DNA of 64,000 nucleotides from Hemiscyllium ocellatum (GCF_020745735.1 NW_026869311.1:1-64000), one strand, 5' to 3'. Shown: positions 1-64,000, counted from the first letter of the stretch. The notes: generated from the letters alone by a model not told the origin. Numbers and translations: made by a program.

Positions 1-1699
1 GGCTCCCAGTCTCTTCAGGTTGGTGATGTGATCTCCCAGCTTCTTGATCATCTTCACTTGCTCATCCAAGTAGTGCCTCTCCAGGAAGTCACACAGCTGG
101 AAGGAAAGAGATATTGAGTATTGGATCAGACAGACAAGAGTGAATTAGTTTGTTAGGGATTGATGGAACAGCTGGCTATTTACAAGAACACGTTAAAACT
201 GCCTTCTCAGCTACAACTACTCTAGAAGGCAGCACCAACGGGACTTGCATGCAAGTGCTAAGCTCATTCCATTTAATGGAGAACTGATCCCATTATTTAT
301 ACCCCAGATACCAAACAAACCAAAAACCCACCAGGATCAGATCGATAACTGAGGCAACAACATTTGCTGTTAAACACAAGCCACACAGCCCTAGACCAAC
401 ATGGAGTGCAGGGTCCAACATCACCTTCAACACCACTGAAAATTCAGCCATCAGGAACTCACATGAGGGTCCATGTGGCTGGAGGAGAGTTTGTGCAGAT
501 CCAGCAGACTCTGGTTCACATCCTTCTCCATCTGCAGAGCTCTCTGCATTGCCTCCAGACCATTGCCCCACTCATCCTGCTCTGGCTTCTGGAGGGGAAA
601 ACCAGAAATGTTTCCGTCAATGTGAAAAGGGAACCAATGTGCAACGGAGTAAAGCAAAAGGTAACTCTGAACTAGTGTCCATATCGTCTTACTCCAAAGG
701 ACTTAAAATGGTATAAATATGACAGATACTGTTTGTTATAATATAGGATGTAGCCCCTACCTTGACATCCTGCAGGAGGATCCTGCCTCCACGTTTATTC
801 TGGAATTCCATCAGTTTCTCAGCGTGTTCCCGTTCCTCATGGGACTGCTCCTTGAAGAACTCAGCAAAGTGACGCAGGGCAACATCATCCCGGTCAAAGC
901 AAGCGGACTGGGGAGGAGGAAAATCAAGACAAGACAGGCCTAGATCTGACTCAGGAATTCAAAAGGGGACAAACAGCTCATTGCTAATTCTCTACCTGCC
1001 TTCAAAATTAGAGACACTTCAAACTTAAGGTATTGGCTGAGGAACTTCTTTAAGAAAACAGCTTGAACACATTGGAAAGGCCATCCCTGAGTGTGCCTGA
1101 TCAGGTTAGTAAGTGGGTTAGAAATCCAGAGTCAGCAATAATATTTGCTGTAACCTATTCAGCAAACAATCTCATTCTAGAGAACTCTTCCTCATTATCA
1201 GGGTCACCTCAAAAAGGGAGTGAAGACTCTGCTAGACAGTAGTTTAAATAGATAGAATTACTACTTCTTTGCAAAAAGCACTCTCAGCATTTACATGTGA
1301 ATTCACCCCTTCCTAAAAAAGGGAGCAAGCCACGTAATTACATTCAGTTTTACCATTAAGACCAGGAATTTGACTACATGTATTCATTAATACCATTACC
1401 AGTCACCACTTCAATGAACAGAAATATTGCAAAACAGTAGAGATAAGATTGTTCTTAGCTATTTTCAGTATTCTCTCTCAGGAAGATAACAGAAATATAC
1501 ACTAAACTACAGGTCACTGACTAAGCAACCACTTTCTTAGAATGCACTGAATTAATAACCATTTTTTAAAAAAGGACCCAAAATATACAAGTCTCACCAT
1601 GGAGAGGTAAACATAGGAGGAATAGAGCTCCAGGTTGATCAGCTTGTTAACAGCATCCTCACAGTCCTTGTGGTAGTTCTGACACACTTGGGAGGCCAT
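1..1699 (-). CDS. Ferritin (heavy/middle-subunit type), array copy 1; 3' end runs off the window
   Basis: Exons 1699-1598, 907-761, 588-463, 96-<1 with GT/AG junctions, all phase 0. Protein [34 protein letters not shown]|[49 protein letters not shown]|[42 protein letters not shown]|[32 protein letters not shown]... Standard vertebrate ferritin exon sizes (102/147/126 bp). Confidence 0.95.
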
Positions 1700-1759
1700 C
1701 TTCACACTTACTAACAGAAGGCAAACTCAAAAACACAAGCTAATTCTAGCTACTATGAG

Positions 1760-1865
1760 CCTAGTATTTATACCAATGGGAATCCTGCATTCCAACAGGA
1801 AATGTTATCACCAATAATGATTGGCTATTGGCGATTACCAATAAGGAATCTCTTGTGAATCCAGG
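1760..1865 (-). promoter_or_regulatory. Ferritin copy 1 promoter: TATAAATA box plus CCAAT cluster
   Basis: TATAAATA at 1772-1765, about 66 nt upstream of the ATG, with several CCAAT/ATTGG motifs immediately upstream. Confidence 0.65.
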
Positions 1866-2034
1866 TATTAATTAGAGAGAGGGAAAAGTAACCAGCTTTT
1901 TAACAATTTGGGACCATGGGATCAGGAGGAAACCATCCAAGCCCTCTAACCTGTTTCACTGTTTAACCACATCTCGGCTGGTTTGCATCTCAGTTCCATA
2001 TCACCCACCTTCTACCAGATCACAAAATCAAAGA

Positions 2035-61133: not shown

Positions 61134-63704
61134 TAATCCCAGGATATTGATAGTGGGGGATTCTTGGTAATGTTATTGAATGTCATGGGGTAATGGTTAG
61201 ATTCTCCTTTAGTGGAGGTGGCCATTGCCTGGTACTTATATGGCTCAAATATAAATTGTCAGTTGTCAGCCTGAACCTGGATATTGTCCAATCCTTACCG
61301 TATATAGAAATTGACCGCTTCACTTTATGAGAAATTATAAGCTACTTTGTAAAAGCAGTTGAGAAATAAAACCAGAACATGCTGGAGAGTCTCCGTGGGT
61401 CTGGCCGAATCTGTGGGAGGATGCGTAAAGTTAATGTTGAGTCCAATGACTGAGTCAAAATGTGACTCAAATTATTAACTCTGTTTCTCTCTCCAAAGAG
61501 GCTGGCAGCTCTGCTGAGATTCTTCAGCAATTTCTGCTGTGGTTCCAGATTTCCATTTTCTGTGGGATTTTGATTTTTTTTTAATCAAAATGGTTCAATT
61601 CCAGGGTGAGGTGGAGATGTGTTCCCTTTGATTAACCTCAGTGTGAGATAGGCCTGACAGAGTGGCTTTGATTCACATCTGGAGCCACCAATAACATCTC
61701 ACTGAGAAGCCTCTTGTGAAAGATGCCTGTGGGCACAGTTGATGTGTCTGACCAGAAACTGTATTCATGTATTTACGCTCGTTCTGGTCAAAAACGATCC
61801 AACACGTATTGATATCCAGCGGTCACAAAGACCTTATCCAAATGGATGGACATCACATGGTCACTCAATGATCATCAGAGACTTTGAAAAATGCCTTTGG
61901 ATACTGGCTCTGGGGGTAACTACTGACAGATGCTTTATCTAAGATTACATTGAATTTAGTATCCCTAATTTATTCGGGAGTAGGGATGGGGATAGATTCA
62001 AAACAAAATCAAGGTGGTGAAAAACAAACTCCTACAGATGATTTTCGTCACAATGACAGAGATGAAATAGGACTGTAAATATCTTTGTGAGCTACAAGGA
62101 CATAAATATCTAACTTTGTTACTGTTCCCATCAAATTCCTAACATTCTATTCTATGGGATATGGATAATGGCCAGGCCAGCATTTACCCCATCCCTAGAG
62201 CCAATCATATTGCTGTAGGTGAGTCTGGAGTCCCGTGTAGGCCAGCTCAGGTAAGGACAGCAGATTTCTTTCCCTGAAGAGCAGTTGTGTACCAGGTCGG
62301 GATTCTCCCTGACAATGGACAACAGCTTCATGGTCGCAGAATGTGGTGCTGGAAAAGCACAGCAGGTCAGGCAGCATCCGAGGAGCAGGGGAATTGATGT
62401 TTGGGGTATGAGCCCTCCATCAGGATAAAAGGCTGATACCCGAAATGTCGACTCGAGGGCCGATGGGCCTATACTACGCTGTAACGTTCTCCTGCTCCTC
62501 AGATGCTGCCTGACCTGCTGTGCTTTTCCAGCACCACACATTTTGACTCTGACCCCCAGCATCTGCATTCCTCACTTTCTCCTAACAGCTCCATGGTCCT
62601 CTTTGACTGGATATTTGGATGTGGAGGAGGGTGAAGGTGAAGCATTTACTTCTGTCCACATTGAATTCACAATGCCCTATCTAAATTGGTTAATGGAGCA
62701 CTGTTCCACAGACTCCACTCCTGCCAATATCTTAACTTGGCTGCTGTTGAGGTGTACTTGTCTAGGTTATAGAGAGGCTTAGAGAGAGGAGTTTACTTCA
62801 AATAGTGAACATTATGGCTACGTTCAGCATCGTCCAAGCAGCCACTCTTGCAGGTTCTCACGGTGTAGGGTTAAACTTCCCCAGTGAGTCTAATGCAGTA
62901 ATTGTGGATTGGAGAGAGGGCCTAGGGCCATCACATGTTAAGATTACTGTGACATTCCACAGATTCACCAACTTTTCAGATTACCTAAACCAGGAAAGCT
63001 CTAAAGTAGACAAAAAAAATTCCAACCTTGCAGATTAGACAATAATATTCACAGGACAGTATCCTCACCACTTCAAGCACAGTTTAATGAGCTATGGAGA
63101 TAAGCCTCCAGGCTTTGCTTCTAAGAAAACCAGCAAGTTTAATACAGTTGTGATTTCCAGAGAGAACTTACTGTGAAACTTGCTCTAATTTAGGATGCAA
63201 GGAGTGGGGAAGGTGGTTATGGATTTGAAAAACCAAAACAGCTGAGGTTTTAGTCTAACTGGTGATGGTCAGATAGTGTTAGCAAAGTTATTAACAGCAG
63301 CACTGGCCCTTGCACTTGTCTACAGACAAAGTTTGTAAAACTCCTCTTGCAGATCAGAATCTGGTAGTGCTAGTCTCCCCCCATACTGGGGTAAACATTT
63401 GCTCCATAAAGCCTGCTCTATACCTGGTCTTATACCCACCCCACATATTTGGTGTCAGATGAAGTAATTTGGACTGGATTTAATTATTGATCTGGATCAA
63501 GAGATCCTCTGATAGCAAGTCACAGCACAGACCTATATACAGTTTGACCTACTAGGCAGCAAAAAACAATCCAACAATGAGCAGTTTATTTACAATTGGT
63601 ACATTCCATCATCAAGCCCAGGACAGTAAACTACTTCCACAGCTTCACATTCTATAGAACTCATTCATAGAGAAAACAACAAAGTCTTGCTCCCTGCAGT
63701 CAGT

Positions 63705-63860
63705 TCAGTCACTCTCCCCCAGGGTGAGCCTGTCAAACAGGTATTCTCCCAGGCCATTCTCAGGGGCTCCCAGTCTCTTCAGGTTGGTGATGTGATCTCC
63801 CAGCTTCTTGATCATCTTCACTTGCTCATCCAAGTAGTGCCTCTCCAGGAAGTCACACAG
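63705..63860 (-). CDS. Ferritin, array copy 9; last exon only, rest lies beyond the window
   Basis: Exon 4 [51 protein letters not shown] with AG acceptor. AATAAA at 63590-63585. Confidence 0.93.
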
Positions 63861-64000
63861 CTGGAAGGGAAAGAGAAAATCTGATTATGTCAAGATCAAC
63901 TTGACTTTTCTCTAAGCCTGGTATTCCCCTCAGTATGGAGAGTGGACAGTTAAGTGATGTGACAGATTGCTGAAGAGCCTTTAGAAAGTGCTCAGATCTG

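Follow-up and report, generated by a model that had tools for sequence, protein, structure and literature searches.

A segment of the elasmobranch ferritin tandem arrays in Hemiscyllium ocellatum: H-type genes without an iron-responsive element, probably amplified for gene dosage

Large near-identical tandem arrays that evolve in concert are known for the oocyte 5S rRNA genes of Xenopus and the early histone genes of sea urchins, and the usual explanation for oocyte-type arrays is that a single nucleus must supply a giant egg. Among ferritins, the closest described systems are clusters in other sharks. In its paragraph on these clusters, the Greenland-shark genome preprint gives 155 ‘FTL’ and 179 ‘FTH1’ copies, ~80% of them in three clusters, that are conserved between distant sharks (Greenland and great white) and show ovary-specific expression, with large arrays kept in lineages at least 250 million years apart (bioRxiv 10.1101/2024.09.09.611499). 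In the hadal snailfish, fthl27 is present in 14 tandem copies, which have been read as a dosage gain, are expressed in most tissues and are connected with tolerance of reactive oxygen species (PMC10746142). The yolk ferritin of the snails Lymnaea and Biomphalaria has no iron-responsive element (IRE), which has been read as iron-independent expression; the protein, encoded by a single gene, carries a signal peptide and an insert of 42 aa and is secreted, with the digestive gland as its site of synthesis (PMC10799875).

The 64-kb stretch of H. ocellatum DNA analyzed here (the window) is a piece of the known huge elasmobranch ferritin clusters, so the array as such has already been reported; the novelty implied by the first-pass annotation has to be given up in view of the RefSeq annotation of this expansion in many sharks and of the preprint paragraph (bioRxiv 10.1101/2024.09.09.611499). 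Like the Greenland and great white shark clusters as described in that paragraph, the window contains many full-length, intron-containing ferritin genes in tandem, of a family common to distant sharks. The species and order are different (Hemiscyllium belongs to Orectolobiformes), and the window copies are all predicted to be H-type. The teleost fthl27 expansion is also a tandem ferritin-H-like duplication read as dosage gain, but it is independent, much smaller, lineage-specific and linked to reactive oxygen species rather than to the ovary. Snail yolk ferritin is similar in being an IRE-free paralog tied to egg provisioning, a role that is only inferred for the shark genes, but differs in that the window proteins have no N-terminal extension past the ferritin domain and are encoded by multiple copies. 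The oocyte 5S and histone arrays involve different gene products and polymerases, and their likeness to the shark array is an analogy only.

A combination of motif scan, tblastn and exon-by-exon blastn identifies nine ferritin genes in the window, all on the minus strand and arranged head-to-tail, of which seven (c2-c8) are complete and two (c1 and c9) are each truncated by a window edge. The copies, with coordinates given from ATG to stop codon, are as follows:

1699-1 (exons 1699-1598, 907-761, 588-463, 96-1), minus strand: ferritin copy c1, truncated at the window start; the final 60 nt of the coding sequence are absent, the frame is open in the part present and the introns are GT-AG
19406-17739 (exons 19406-19305, 18585-18439, 18273-18148, 17885-17739), minus strand: ferritin copy c2, complete, 173 aa, ending ...TLS
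25755-22750 (exons 25755-25654, 23857-23711, 23154-23029, 22896-22750), minus strand: ferritin copy c3, complete, 173 aa
31363-29153 (exons 31363-31262, 30038-29892, 29587-29462, 29308-29153), minus strand: ferritin copy c4, complete, 176 aa
37782-35612 (exons 37782-37681, 36475-36329, 36046-35921, 35767-35612), minus strand: ferritin copy c5, complete, 176 aa
44563-42486 (exons 44563-44462, 43512-43366, 43046-42921, 42641-42486), minus strand: ferritin copy c6, complete, 176 aa
52718-50482 (exons 52718-52617, 51287-51141, 50917-50792, 50637-50482), minus strand: ferritin copy c7, complete, 176 aa
58369-56336 (exons 58369-58268, 57376-57230, 57064-56939, 56491-56336), minus strand: ferritin copy c8, complete, 176 aa
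63705-64000 (exon 4 at 63860-63705 plus a portion of intron 3), minus strand: ferritin copy c9, the remainder lying past the window end

The reading frames of all seven complete copies, encoding 173 aa (c2, c3) or 176 aa (c4-c8), are free of stop codons and frameshifts; each comprises four exons and three introns, and the 24 introns that lie inside the window all begin with GT and end with AG. The first-pass description of an array that is open at both ends, with nine same-strand copies including seven intact, complete ones, therefore holds, and the chondrichthyan source presumed there is correct as well. Processed (intronless) derivatives, such as FTMT and FTHL17, were considered and rejected because every complete copy carries three GT-AG introns. 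The repeat unit is ~6-8 kb long, with one complete four-exon gene apiece, and no Pfam-recognizable genes other than ferritin were found within the 64-kb window. According to a gene-position look-up in the public annotation, a 176-aa gene completes c9 just past the window end, reaching ~65442. The c3 protein is identical to the database protein P0123, c6 is the copy nearest to all others, and the exact c8 protein is recorded only on the source scaffold of the window, an unplaced sequence of 155,646 bp in GCA_020745735.1, where gene lengths and spacings are the same as in the window.

A near-identical twin of this scaffold, differing by 1 bp over 5.6 kb, lies on the 50-Mb chromosome, so that genome-wide ferritin copy counts may be inflated by an uncollapsed haplotype; the nine in-window copies are unaffected. 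The twin, the unplaced status of the scaffold and the N gap inside it are features that over-assembly of one or a few genes into nine copies could leave behind, but such an artifact is highly improbable, considering that intron lengths range from 132 to 1796 bp across copies, that introns and spacers are mostly unalignable, that the spacers differ in length and collect transposons whose insertions differ between copies, and that tandem ferritin neighbors occur in four other species, each with its own independent assembly. Such neighbors were directly seen in the Stegostoma, Heptranchias and Callorhinchus loci, and tandem relatives are present in Chiloscyllium loci too. The initial judgment that copies with such divergent introns are unlikely to be assembly artifacts is thus sustained.

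A Pfam search yields a match to PF00210 at E = 2.8e-41, with 141 bits (cut-off 24.5) and coverage of profile positions 2-141 out of 142, and the best relatives with solved structures are the bullfrog H and M ferritins, aligned without gaps over residues 1-175, with near-equal PDB scores for the M and H chains. All ferroxidase-center residues (Glu27, Tyr34, Glu61, Glu62, His65, Glu107 and Gln141 in human H numbering) are present in c1-c8, as are the residues of the 3-fold pore. Since the ferroxidase center is kept in all copies, these proteins belong to the H/M type, and the in-window copies are predicted to be H-type, ferroxidase-competent ferritin subunits. In L-type ferritin, the ferroxidase residues are replaced (e.g., Glu62 to Lys and His65 to Gly); given that they are intact here, an L-type subunit was rejected for all in-window copies. 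In contrast to canonical FTH1, the 4-fold-channel His is replaced by Leu. Bullfrog M ferritin (PDB 1MFR) resembles the window proteins in its length of 176 aa, gapless alignment, a PDB score among the best and a ferroxidase-active type; its mRNA carries an IRE. However, the window copies have Met rather than Asp at position 140 (frog numbering), and on the tree, with its weakly supported deep branches, they are set apart from the shark ‘M-like’ clade, a second expanded ferritin family that is 75-78% identical and located elsewhere, and from the tetrapod A/M-type genes. Identity to skate and salamander FTH1 is ~75-77%, and the in-window proteins differ from one another at 2-8 of 173 positions. 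Because they are near-identical and all H-type, a mixed shell would behave like a homopolymer, and little is gained by the earlier proposal of heteropolymeric 24-mers built from paralogs.

Clusters of this ferritin family comprise 54-180 members in Chiloscyllium, Stegostoma, Rhincodon, Heptranchias, Pristiophorus and other taxa, and proteins of the same clade are present in Carcharodon and many other sharks. Comparison across chondrichthyan genomes, which the first-pass annotation had called for, thus finds the expansion in all elasmobranch orders sampled and two copies of the lineage in a chimaera (Callorhinchus). In a quick, unrooted tree, the window copies fall within an orectolobiform clade (SH-aLRT 98) that is nested in an elasmobranch-wide clade, with a Callorhinchus gene as the nearest relative (SH-aLRT 95), and the grouping of copies follows taxon rather than orthology. 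Skate FTH1 groups with the FTH1 of teleosts, sturgeon and salamander, apart from the window copies, so that orthology of the latter to canonical FTH1 was rejected. The phylogeny of H, M and L ferritins suggested at the outset accordingly delivers a separate elasmobranch clade, on a tree without a root and with weak support for the deep branches. The gene neighborhood also differs: skate FTH1 is the single ferritin gene in a 14-kb locus and adjoins a gene with an INCENP domain, whereas the 64-kb window contains a multi-copy tandem array of ferritin and no other Pfam-recognizable gene. The window genes do share with canonical vertebrate FTH1 the four exons and their sizes, membership in the 24-mer ferritin fold family, the ferroxidase residues and a CCAAT-containing promoter. 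These observations are best read as indicating a paralogous lineage distinct from true FTH1 that would have been present already in the common ancestor with chimaeras.

Searches of the whole window with IRE_I and IRE_II produce no match, whether at the gathering score or with the cut-off relaxed to E <= 10, and a scan for the IRE pattern finds none; in the positive control, the mRNA and gene of skate FTH1 give an IRE_I score of 46.7 bits against a threshold of 34. Thus, the 5'-UTR IRE that marks canonical FTH1 orthologs was not found in the window genes, nor was an IRE found in the Heptranchias, Stegostoma and Callorhinchus loci or in the Stegostoma M-like array. The position of the TATA box, at -67 to -78, implies a 5' UTR of only ~45 nt, compared to ~200 nt in canonical FTH1. 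The absence of an IRE applies to the window DNA, and the location of the TATA box directly 5' of the ATG exon argues against a far-upstream non-coding exon. One Heptranchias copy retains an IRE relic: the 5' strand of the IRE matches at 13 of 13 bases, and the loop reads UAGAG in place of CAGUG. The UAGAG-UUGU part of this relic is also present in the window copies, which are missing 10 nt of the 5' strand and have a 5' UTR that looks like a decayed IRE. With the IRE lost, the mRNAs should, judging from the sequence, be translated without IRP repression.

All eight copies with a start codon in the window have a TATA box (G/TATAAAT/C) 67-78 nt 5' of the ATG and, behind it, three to four ATTGG (inverted CCAAT) boxes:

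1700-1846, minus strand: c1 promoter, TATAAAT at -73 and three ATTGG boxes; the most diverged among the eight
19407-19613, minus strand: c2 promoter, GATAAAT at -67, ATTGG boxes and two CTGATTGG
25756-25983, minus strand: c3 promoter, TATA and ATTGG boxes
31364-31564, minus strand: c4 promoter, TATA and ATTGG boxes
37783-37983, minus strand: c5 promoter, TATA and ATTGG boxes
44564-44790, minus strand: c6 promoter, GATAAAC at -75
52719-52949, minus strand: c7 promoter, TATA and ATTGG boxes
58370-58598, minus strand: c8 promoter, TATA and ATTGG boxes

This promoter architecture is kept as far as chimaera. An AATAAA signal follows each stop codon at a distance of 43-151 nt, and the canonical splice sites, promoter and polyA signal initially ascribed to the complete copies are confirmed.

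The exons are ~98% identical between copies (dS 0.040), whereas in the introns a median of only 4% of the sequence is alignable between paralogs, identity falling off within 25 nt of each splice junction. Neighboring Heptranchias copies show the same contrast (exons 96.8% identical, 2% of intron alignable). This contrast points to homogenization that would be limited to exons; rapid intron turnover or strong selection on synonymous sites could contribute. A rival explanation for this step alone, under which purifying selection that extends to synonymous sites (e.g., for translation efficiency or mRNA stability), rather than gene conversion, keeps the exons near-identical, would account for the drop of identity exactly at the exon boundaries and is favored by the exon lengths of 102-156 bp, short for conversion tracts. 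This explanation nevertheless appears doubtful because dS is 0.04 within the array but 0.065 in comparison with Stegostoma, 0.22-0.27 with Heptranchias and 0.72 with Callorhinchus, which shows that synonymous sites are not frozen; variable sites are spread near-evenly over codon positions 1, 2 and 3 (9, 11 and 10), in mosaic patterns such that 14 of 36 pairs of informative sites fail the four-gamete test; copies cluster by taxon; and the two chimaera paralogs, located outside any large array, have diverged to 81.8% identity in their exons.

Apart from the genes, three features of the array are relevant:

4548-14561, minus strand: LTR retroelement inserted in the c1-c2 spacer
15728-15882, no strand: assembly gap of 155 N in the c1-c2 intergenic spacer
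29131-35773 and 35590-42647, minus strand: the pair of units produced by a recent tandem duplication of ~6.5 kb, giving c4 and c5

The retroelement has LTRs (4548-5217 and 13896-14566) that are 98.7% identical and have TG..CA ends, a flanking 4-bp target duplication (ATAC) and, read on the minus strand, a purine tract adjoining the left LTR; no ORF longer than 232 aa and no Pfam domain were found in it. It lies outside the ferritin system and accounts for the length of the c1-c2 spacer: of 16,030 bp, ~10 kb belong to this element, and the remaining ~6 kb are close to the largest other spacer in the window (5.9 kb), so that the long spacer alone demands no hidden ferritin copy. The gap, with the c2 stop codon 1.86 kb away and the c1 ATG 14 kb away, leaves the exons and introns of all ferritin copies untouched and thus affects none of the reading frames; it could, however, conceal sequence. 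Across gene, introns and spacer, the units of c4 and c5 show ~95% identity over 6.5 kb, with duplication junctions within exon 4 of the neighboring genes and a ~470-bp insertion in the second unit (~39143-39616). Unequal crossing-over between adjacent units would make the array grow, with c4/c5 as a fresh example, while exon-limited exchange would hold the exons ~98% identical and leave introns and spacers to drift and gather transposons.

Taken together, these observations make it likely that the window is a piece of an elasmobranch tandem array in which an old, IRP-independent ferritin lineage has been amplified for dosage, probably for oocytes. In each unit, a separate compact promoter that combines a TATA box with several inverted CCAAT (‘Y-box’-like) elements would drive expression of a cytosolic, ferroxidase-competent subunit; the lineage would be separate from true FTH1 and, having lost the 5'-UTR IRE, free of IRP repression in translation. 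The most likely purpose is gene dosage, that is, production of very large amounts of apoferritin from one nucleus whatever the iron status, most probably in the ovary or oocyte, where it would give large yolky eggs a capacity for iron storage and antioxidant defense. The site is suggested by the Greenland-shark expression data in the preprint paragraph (bioRxiv 10.1101/2024.09.09.611499), which, together with the intact copies, the promoters kept to chimaera and long-term constraint (omega 0.19-0.30 versus Heptranchias and Callorhinchus), favors the dosage selection and specialized oocyte role proposed in the first-pass annotation; constraint among the window copies themselves is weaker (omega ~0.47, p = 0.04). 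Combined with an in-frame stop that makes at least one Stegostoma copy a pseudogene, this value implies that not every copy need be useful. The same two facts, along with the missing ferroxidase histidine in the Chiloscyllium punctatum copies P0012 and P0016 and the pile-up of transposons in spacers, could be taken as signs of neutral birth-and-death, with unequal crossing-over inflating the array and most copies silent or dying but kept intact through overwriting by a few functional ones. Such a process is quite unlikely, given that all seven complete copies are intact, that in each of them the promoter, the splice sites and the polyA signal are conserved, that promoter architecture and protein sequence are constrained over the long term, and that, according to the preprint paragraph, large arrays persist across at least 250 million years (bioRxiv 10.1101/2024.09.09.611499). 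Somatic stress protection, whereby broad expression would buffer iron and reactive oxygen species, in the epaulette shark perhaps in connection with tolerance of hypoxia and re-oxygenation, has a precedent in the hadal snailfish, where the tandem ferritin-H-like expansion is highly expressed in most tissues and overexpression lowers reactive oxygen species (PMC10746142), and would be compatible with predicted ferroxidase competence and with IRE-free genes expressed whatever the iron status. It is unlikely, however, since the expansion is common to all elasmobranch orders sampled rather than specific to hypoxia-tolerant species, and the sole available statement on expression in sharks, that of the preprint paragraph, is ovary-specific (bioRxiv 10.1101/2024.09.09.611499).

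Dosage for oocytes thus being the preferred reading, a more detailed version can be advanced tentatively: an ancient, IRE-free lineage that pre-dates the chimaera/elasmobranch split, with a 5' UTR derived from a decayed IRE and a promoter of repeated CTGATTGG (Y-box/inverted CCAAT) elements, would have been amplified in elasmobranchs to at least 100 copies (in two sharks, according to the preprint), with sequence exchange that stops at exon borders and might conceivably use spliced transcripts as templates, and with an egg-provisioning dosage that bypasses IRP control. The points concerning the IRE, the promoter and the exon/intron contrast are absent from the published paragraph on shark ferritin clusters (bioRxiv 10.1101/2024.09.09.611499). 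If this account is true, the array would be a vertebrate case of gene-dosage amplification for eggs, comparable to the oocyte 5S and early histone arrays and, functionally, to snail yolk ferritin.

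The window carries nine ferritin genes, all on the minus strand, which are identified by a six-frame motif scan, a tblastn search with one spliced copy and a blastn search with its four exons, and are numbered here by coordinate:

c1: 1699 to 1, minus strand; the final 60 nt of the coding sequence are lost at the window start
c2: 19406-17739, minus strand; complete, 173 aa, C-terminus ...TLS
c3: 25755-22750, minus strand; complete, 173 aa, C-terminus ...TLS; the protein is database entry P0123 (working label)
c4: 31363-29153, minus strand; complete, 176 aa
c5: 37782-35612, minus strand; complete, 176 aa
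c6: 44563-42486, minus strand; complete, 176 aa
c7: 52718-50482, minus strand; complete, 176 aa
c8: 58369-56336, minus strand; complete, 176 aa
c9: 63860-63705, minus strand; exon 4 alone, with the remainder past the window end

The first-pass annotation described nine same-strand copies in an array open at both ends, and c1 and c9 are indeed cut by the window edges; a look-up of public gene positions reveals c9 as a complete 176-aa gene just past the window end. The exons measure 102, 147, 126 and 156 (or 147) nt, and introns 1, 2 and 3 range over 690-1796, 165-556 and 132-447 bp, respectively; for example, c4 spans 2211 bp and c3 3006 bp, with a c4-c3 spacer of 3397 bp and a spacer of 3343 bp after c3; the same four lengths recur exactly around the P0123 gene in assembly GCA_020745735.1. 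The same annotation reported seven complete copies free of stops and frameshifts, canonical splice sites, and a promoter and polyA signal for each copy. All seven reading frames are open (173 or 176 aa), all 24 introns inside the window have GT...AG ends, each of the eight ATGs in the window is preceded by a TATA box at a distance of 67-78 nt, and AATAAA follows every stop codon at 43-151 nt. The observation is thus correct in every particular, and the finding is real and well described.

An assembly artefact had been considered unlikely given the divergent introns, and the comparison of copies agrees: intron lengths differ, only about 4% of the intron is alignable between most copy pairs, and the spacers are unlike, sharing only scattered repeats, so that the copies do not represent an assembly artefact. 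The c4 unit (29131-35773) and the c5 unit (35590-42647) are about 95% identical over gene, introns and spacer, and represent a recent 6.5-kb tandem duplication. The junction falls in exon 4 of adjacent genes, which matches the expectation for unequal crossing-over, the process by which the array enlarges.

The scaffold that contains the window is an unplaced record of 155,646 bp with a near-identical twin, carrying the same genes, on a 50,073,909-bp chromosome of the Hemiscyllium ocellatum assembly (GCA_020745735.1). The distance from the c4 ATG to the c3 ATG is 5608 bp in the window and the 155,646-bp record vs 5609 bp on the chromosome, and the exact c8 protein is on record on the 155,646-bp scaffold only. 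To judge by these sequence comparisons, the chromosomal twin may be either a haplotype left uncollapsed or a segmental duplication of very recent origin, which bears on published or genome-wide copy counts, not on the nine copies of the window. The array is a known trap for annotation: scaffolds that are unplaced and near-identical may inflate ferritin copy counts, and the public gene models frequently merge exons of adjacent copies into proteins of 215-277 aa with two ferritin domains (the group of P0001, P0002, P0008, P0011, P0012 and P0016).

The exons of the window are about 98% identical (mean dS 0.040, mean dN 0.013-0.015), and by 25-50 nt from every splice junction, identity has fallen to what a shuffled control gives. 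Introns were compared by the fraction alignable with BLAST; a global p-distance of about 0.22 was dropped because a shuffled control, run with the junction-anchored aligner, aligned about as well (68% identity). Besides c4/c5, only three groups of pairs have alignable introns:

Alignable introns outside the c4/c5 pair
c1/c2: 57% of intron alignable, 82% identity in the aligned part
c2/c8: 34% of intron alignable, 81% identity in the aligned part
c4 or c5 with c6: 18-19% of intron alignable, 80% identity in the aligned part

In the young pair c4/c5, the introns are 96% identical, yet the exons are no more similar than those of old pairs. The 30 variable sites among 471 coding sites are spread roughly evenly over the three codon positions, and 14 of the 36 informative-site pairs fail the four-gamete test, indicating that the exons are mosaics. 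A similar pattern is found in Heptranchias perlo, where the exons of neighboring copies are 96.8% identical and 2% of the intron is alignable; the exons of two chimaera paralogs, which lie outside any large array, have drifted to 81.8%. Copies cluster by taxon on the tree. A BLAST comparison of the window introns with the Stegostoma, Heptranchias and Callorhinchus loci, which are not necessarily orthologous, yields no match at E <= 1e-10. Selection on synonymous sites could contribute to the near-identity of the exons; synonymous sites are not frozen, given that dS between the window copies and those of other species amounts to 0.065 for Stegostoma, 0.22-0.27 for Heptranchias and 0.72 for Callorhinchus. 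Taken as sequence patterns, these results point to exchange among copies that is still going on and is limited to exons, and we infer gene conversion as the agent of this homogenization. The differences between copies show weak constraint (omega 0.47, p = 0.04), and long-term constraint is clear (omega 0.19-0.30). The shark arrays are, in this respect, a clean system for the study of concerted evolution confined to exons.

The encoded proteins match the Pfam ferritin domain with E = 2.8e-41, and any two complete copies have 2-8 differences over 173 positions. The closest solved structures are those of the bullfrog H and M ferritins, which align gap-free over residues 1-175 and are about 70% identical to the window proteins, as estimated from the alignments. 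The residues of the ferroxidase centre and the 3-fold pore, which we take to be those recognized in H and M ferritins, are all present in every copy; the retention of all ferroxidase residues identifies the window subunits as H/M-type rather than L-type. The histidine of the 4-fold channel is replaced by leucine in all copies in the window (residue 170 of the 176-aa protein, presumably equivalent to human H173 and frog M H169) and is kept in Callorhinchus and in one Heptranchias copy. The window copies also have methionine in the position of frog Asp140 (human Ala144). The ferritin domain comes without an N-terminal extension, so that secretion is not suggested. In two copies from C. punctatum, the ferroxidase histidine is replaced (EREDAEK in P0012 and EREPAEK in P0016), and judging from these motifs, some array copies elsewhere may be catalytically dead.

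A search of the whole window for the Rfam iron-responsive element (IRE) finds none, whether at the curated cut-off or with the limit relaxed to E <= 10, and a scan of both strands with a strict IRE pattern is likewise negative. As a positive control, the skate FTH1 mRNA and gene give an IRE_I hit of 46.7 bits (threshold 34), which precedes the ATG by about 100-135 nt. The same search detects no IRE in the Heptranchias, Stegostoma and Callorhinchus loci or in the Stegostoma array of the M-like family, a second expanded shark ferritin family that is 75-78% identical to the window type. Given TATA positions of -67 to -78, a 5' UTR of only about 45 nt is predicted for the window copies. It folds into a small hairpin that we rejected as an IRE candidate, with its 4-nt loop and an energy like that of shuffled sequence (z -1.0 to -1.4). 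The 5' UTR of one Heptranchias copy (locus L005, positions 9950-9985) reads tttcttgcttcaa-TAGAG-ttg, which agrees with the IRE consensus at all 13 bases of the 5' strand; the loop is UAGAG instead of CAGUG, the 3' strand is broken, and there is no Rfam IRE call for this relic. The 5' UTRs of the window copies and of the Stegostoma copies can be aligned with the relic; they have UAGAG-UUGU in common with it and are missing 10 nt of the 5' strand. The presence of the relic in Heptranchias and, in part, in the window copies implies that the lineage derives from an IRE-bearing gene and subsequently lost the element. The array mRNAs would then be expected to escape IRP repression and to be translated independently of iron status.

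Upstream of the TATA box, there are three to four ATTGG boxes per copy. There are 14 instances of the octamer CTGATTGG in the window vs 3.95 expected, and 12 of them, all on the gene strand, belong to the c2-c8 promoters. The promoter layout is recognizable out to Callorhinchus, with CTGATTGGCT present twice, GTCA-TCATCATC, and TATAAATACAAGAG-TTGTGG. We take the CTGATTGG elements to represent the 'Y-box' core, a binding site for NF-Y and for the Y-box proteins of germ cells; the repeated cores fit a role of the array in supplying the oocyte, a match that is only a lead.

The spacers measure 3.3-5.9 kb, except for the 16,030-bp c1-c2 spacer, which contains one large insertion and a run of Ns:

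LTR retroelement: 4548 to ~14561 (~10 kb), minus strand, in the c1-c2 spacer; LTRs at 4548-5217 and 13896-14566

The LTRs (671 bp, 98.7% identical) have TG..CA ends and are flanked by a 4-bp target duplication, ATAC; a purine tract lies beside the left LTR. The element has no ORF longer than 232 aa and no Pfam domain, and is therefore non-autonomous or decayed. It includes a 46-bp x 8.6 tandem repeat at 13235-13622. The N run (15728-15882) lies 1.86 kb from the c2 stop codon and touches no ferritin exon, intron or reading frame. Without the retroelement, the c1-c2 spacer would be about 6 kb long, near the largest of the others, so that length alone gives no reason to posit a hidden copy. A Pfam scan of twenty ORFs from the spacers and the LTR element finds no match except for one ORF that overlaps c3 exon 2. 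A repeat of about 435 bp, with an internal 79-bp x 2 duplication, is present twice (39143-39616 and 60054-60486, 96.6% identity) and is probably a young transposon; the first instance is an insertion that distinguishes the c5 unit from the c4 unit and accordingly arrived after that duplication. Hairpin-forming elements are found at 32197-32276 and 38620-38690, in the duplicated upstream spacers of c4 and c5. Rfam searches at relaxed thresholds give only weak miRNA-like matches, on hairpin-forming repeats (23-37 bits vs thresholds of 63-96); the matches are most likely transposon hairpins, or chance, rather than miRNA genes. Other repeats in the spacers are dispersed pairs at 16418-16992/60267-60837 (inverted, 89%), 3730-4346/45004-45619 (76%) and 47045-47493/58887-59314 (inverted, 71%), and a 334 bp x 1.8 tandem repeat at 48088-48707.

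A homology search identifies similar proteins in Chiloscyllium, Stegostoma, Rhincodon, Heterodontus, Scyliorhinus, Mustelus, Carcharodon, Cetorhinus, Heptranchias, Pristiophorus, Pristis and skates, with 54-180 members in the 90%-identity clusters. Tandem neighbors are present at loci of Stegostoma, Heptranchias and Callorhinchus, with two copies only in the last. In an unrooted maximum likelihood tree (quick search, SH-aLRT support), the window copies belong to an orectolobiform clade (SH-aLRT 98) nested in an elasmobranch-wide clade, the nearest relative of which is one Callorhinchus gene (SH-aLRT 95). The window clade, together with this gene, is apart from both the true FTH1 and the M-like family; the paralog lineage of the window is ancient. 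The skate FTH1 adjoins a gene with an INCENP domain, as human FTH1 presumably does. The M-like family itself is tandem and occurs together with window-type copies on a 102-Mb chromosome of C. punctatum; in Stegostoma tigrinum, the M-like arrays (13.16-13.37 Mb; L010 and L011) are about 8 Mb away from the window-type arrays (21.15-21.3 Mb; L006 and L007) on the same 26.9-Mb chromosome. Gene layout is identical in the Stegostoma window-type loci L006, L007 and L008, two of which are places 143 kb apart and the other an unplaced scaffold, which suggests higher-order repeats. One Stegostoma copy (L006, 16720-19137) is a pseudogene inside an array, its exon 2 being interrupted by an in-frame stop (RGG*VLL) and the copy carrying several unusual substitutions; copies do die. 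Between the two ferritin genes of Callorhinchus milii, there is a sequence resembling a tRNA (L009, 9924-9995; Rfam tRNA, 50.1 bits), which could be a tRNA gene or a SINE of tRNA origin.

The Greenland-shark genome preprint (bioRxiv 10.1101/2024.09.09.611499) describes an ancient expansion common to the Greenland and great white sharks, with 155 'FTL' and 179 'FTH1' copies. According to the preprint, three syntenic clusters contain about 80% of the copies, over 85% of all copies are full length, and expression is ovary-specific. The window-type and M-like families may be what was counted there as 'FTL' and 'FTH1'. The array as such has already been reported from other sharks and is part of the RefSeq annotation, and H. 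ocellatum adds a new species to a known locus type. Our literature search found nothing on epaulette-shark ferritin or on whether the ferritins of cartilaginous fishes have an IRE, and, as far as we found, the IRE loss with a relic, the conserved promoter and the exon-only homogenization are not in the literature. A smaller expansion, in a teleost, is that of the hadal snailfish, with 14 fthl27 copies; snail yolk ferritin is egg-related and likewise lacks an IRE.

The window is an array of intact ferroxidase-type ferritin genes that lack an IRE and have a promoter each, and selection presumably acts on gene dosage. In the reading we favor, with ovary expression adopted from the preprint, the array delivers a very large apoferritin output from one nucleus to a large yolky oocyte. 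There, apoferritin would serve in iron storage and in protection against iron-driven oxidation. In vertebrate iron biology, one or two cytosolic ferritin genes are assumed, under IRE/IRP translational control. Sharks depart from both, with very many intact H-type genes and with the IRE lost in the examined array sequences. If the ovary-specific expression seen in the Greenland shark is general, it would be gene number that equips the giant egg with a protein for iron storage or antioxidant defense.
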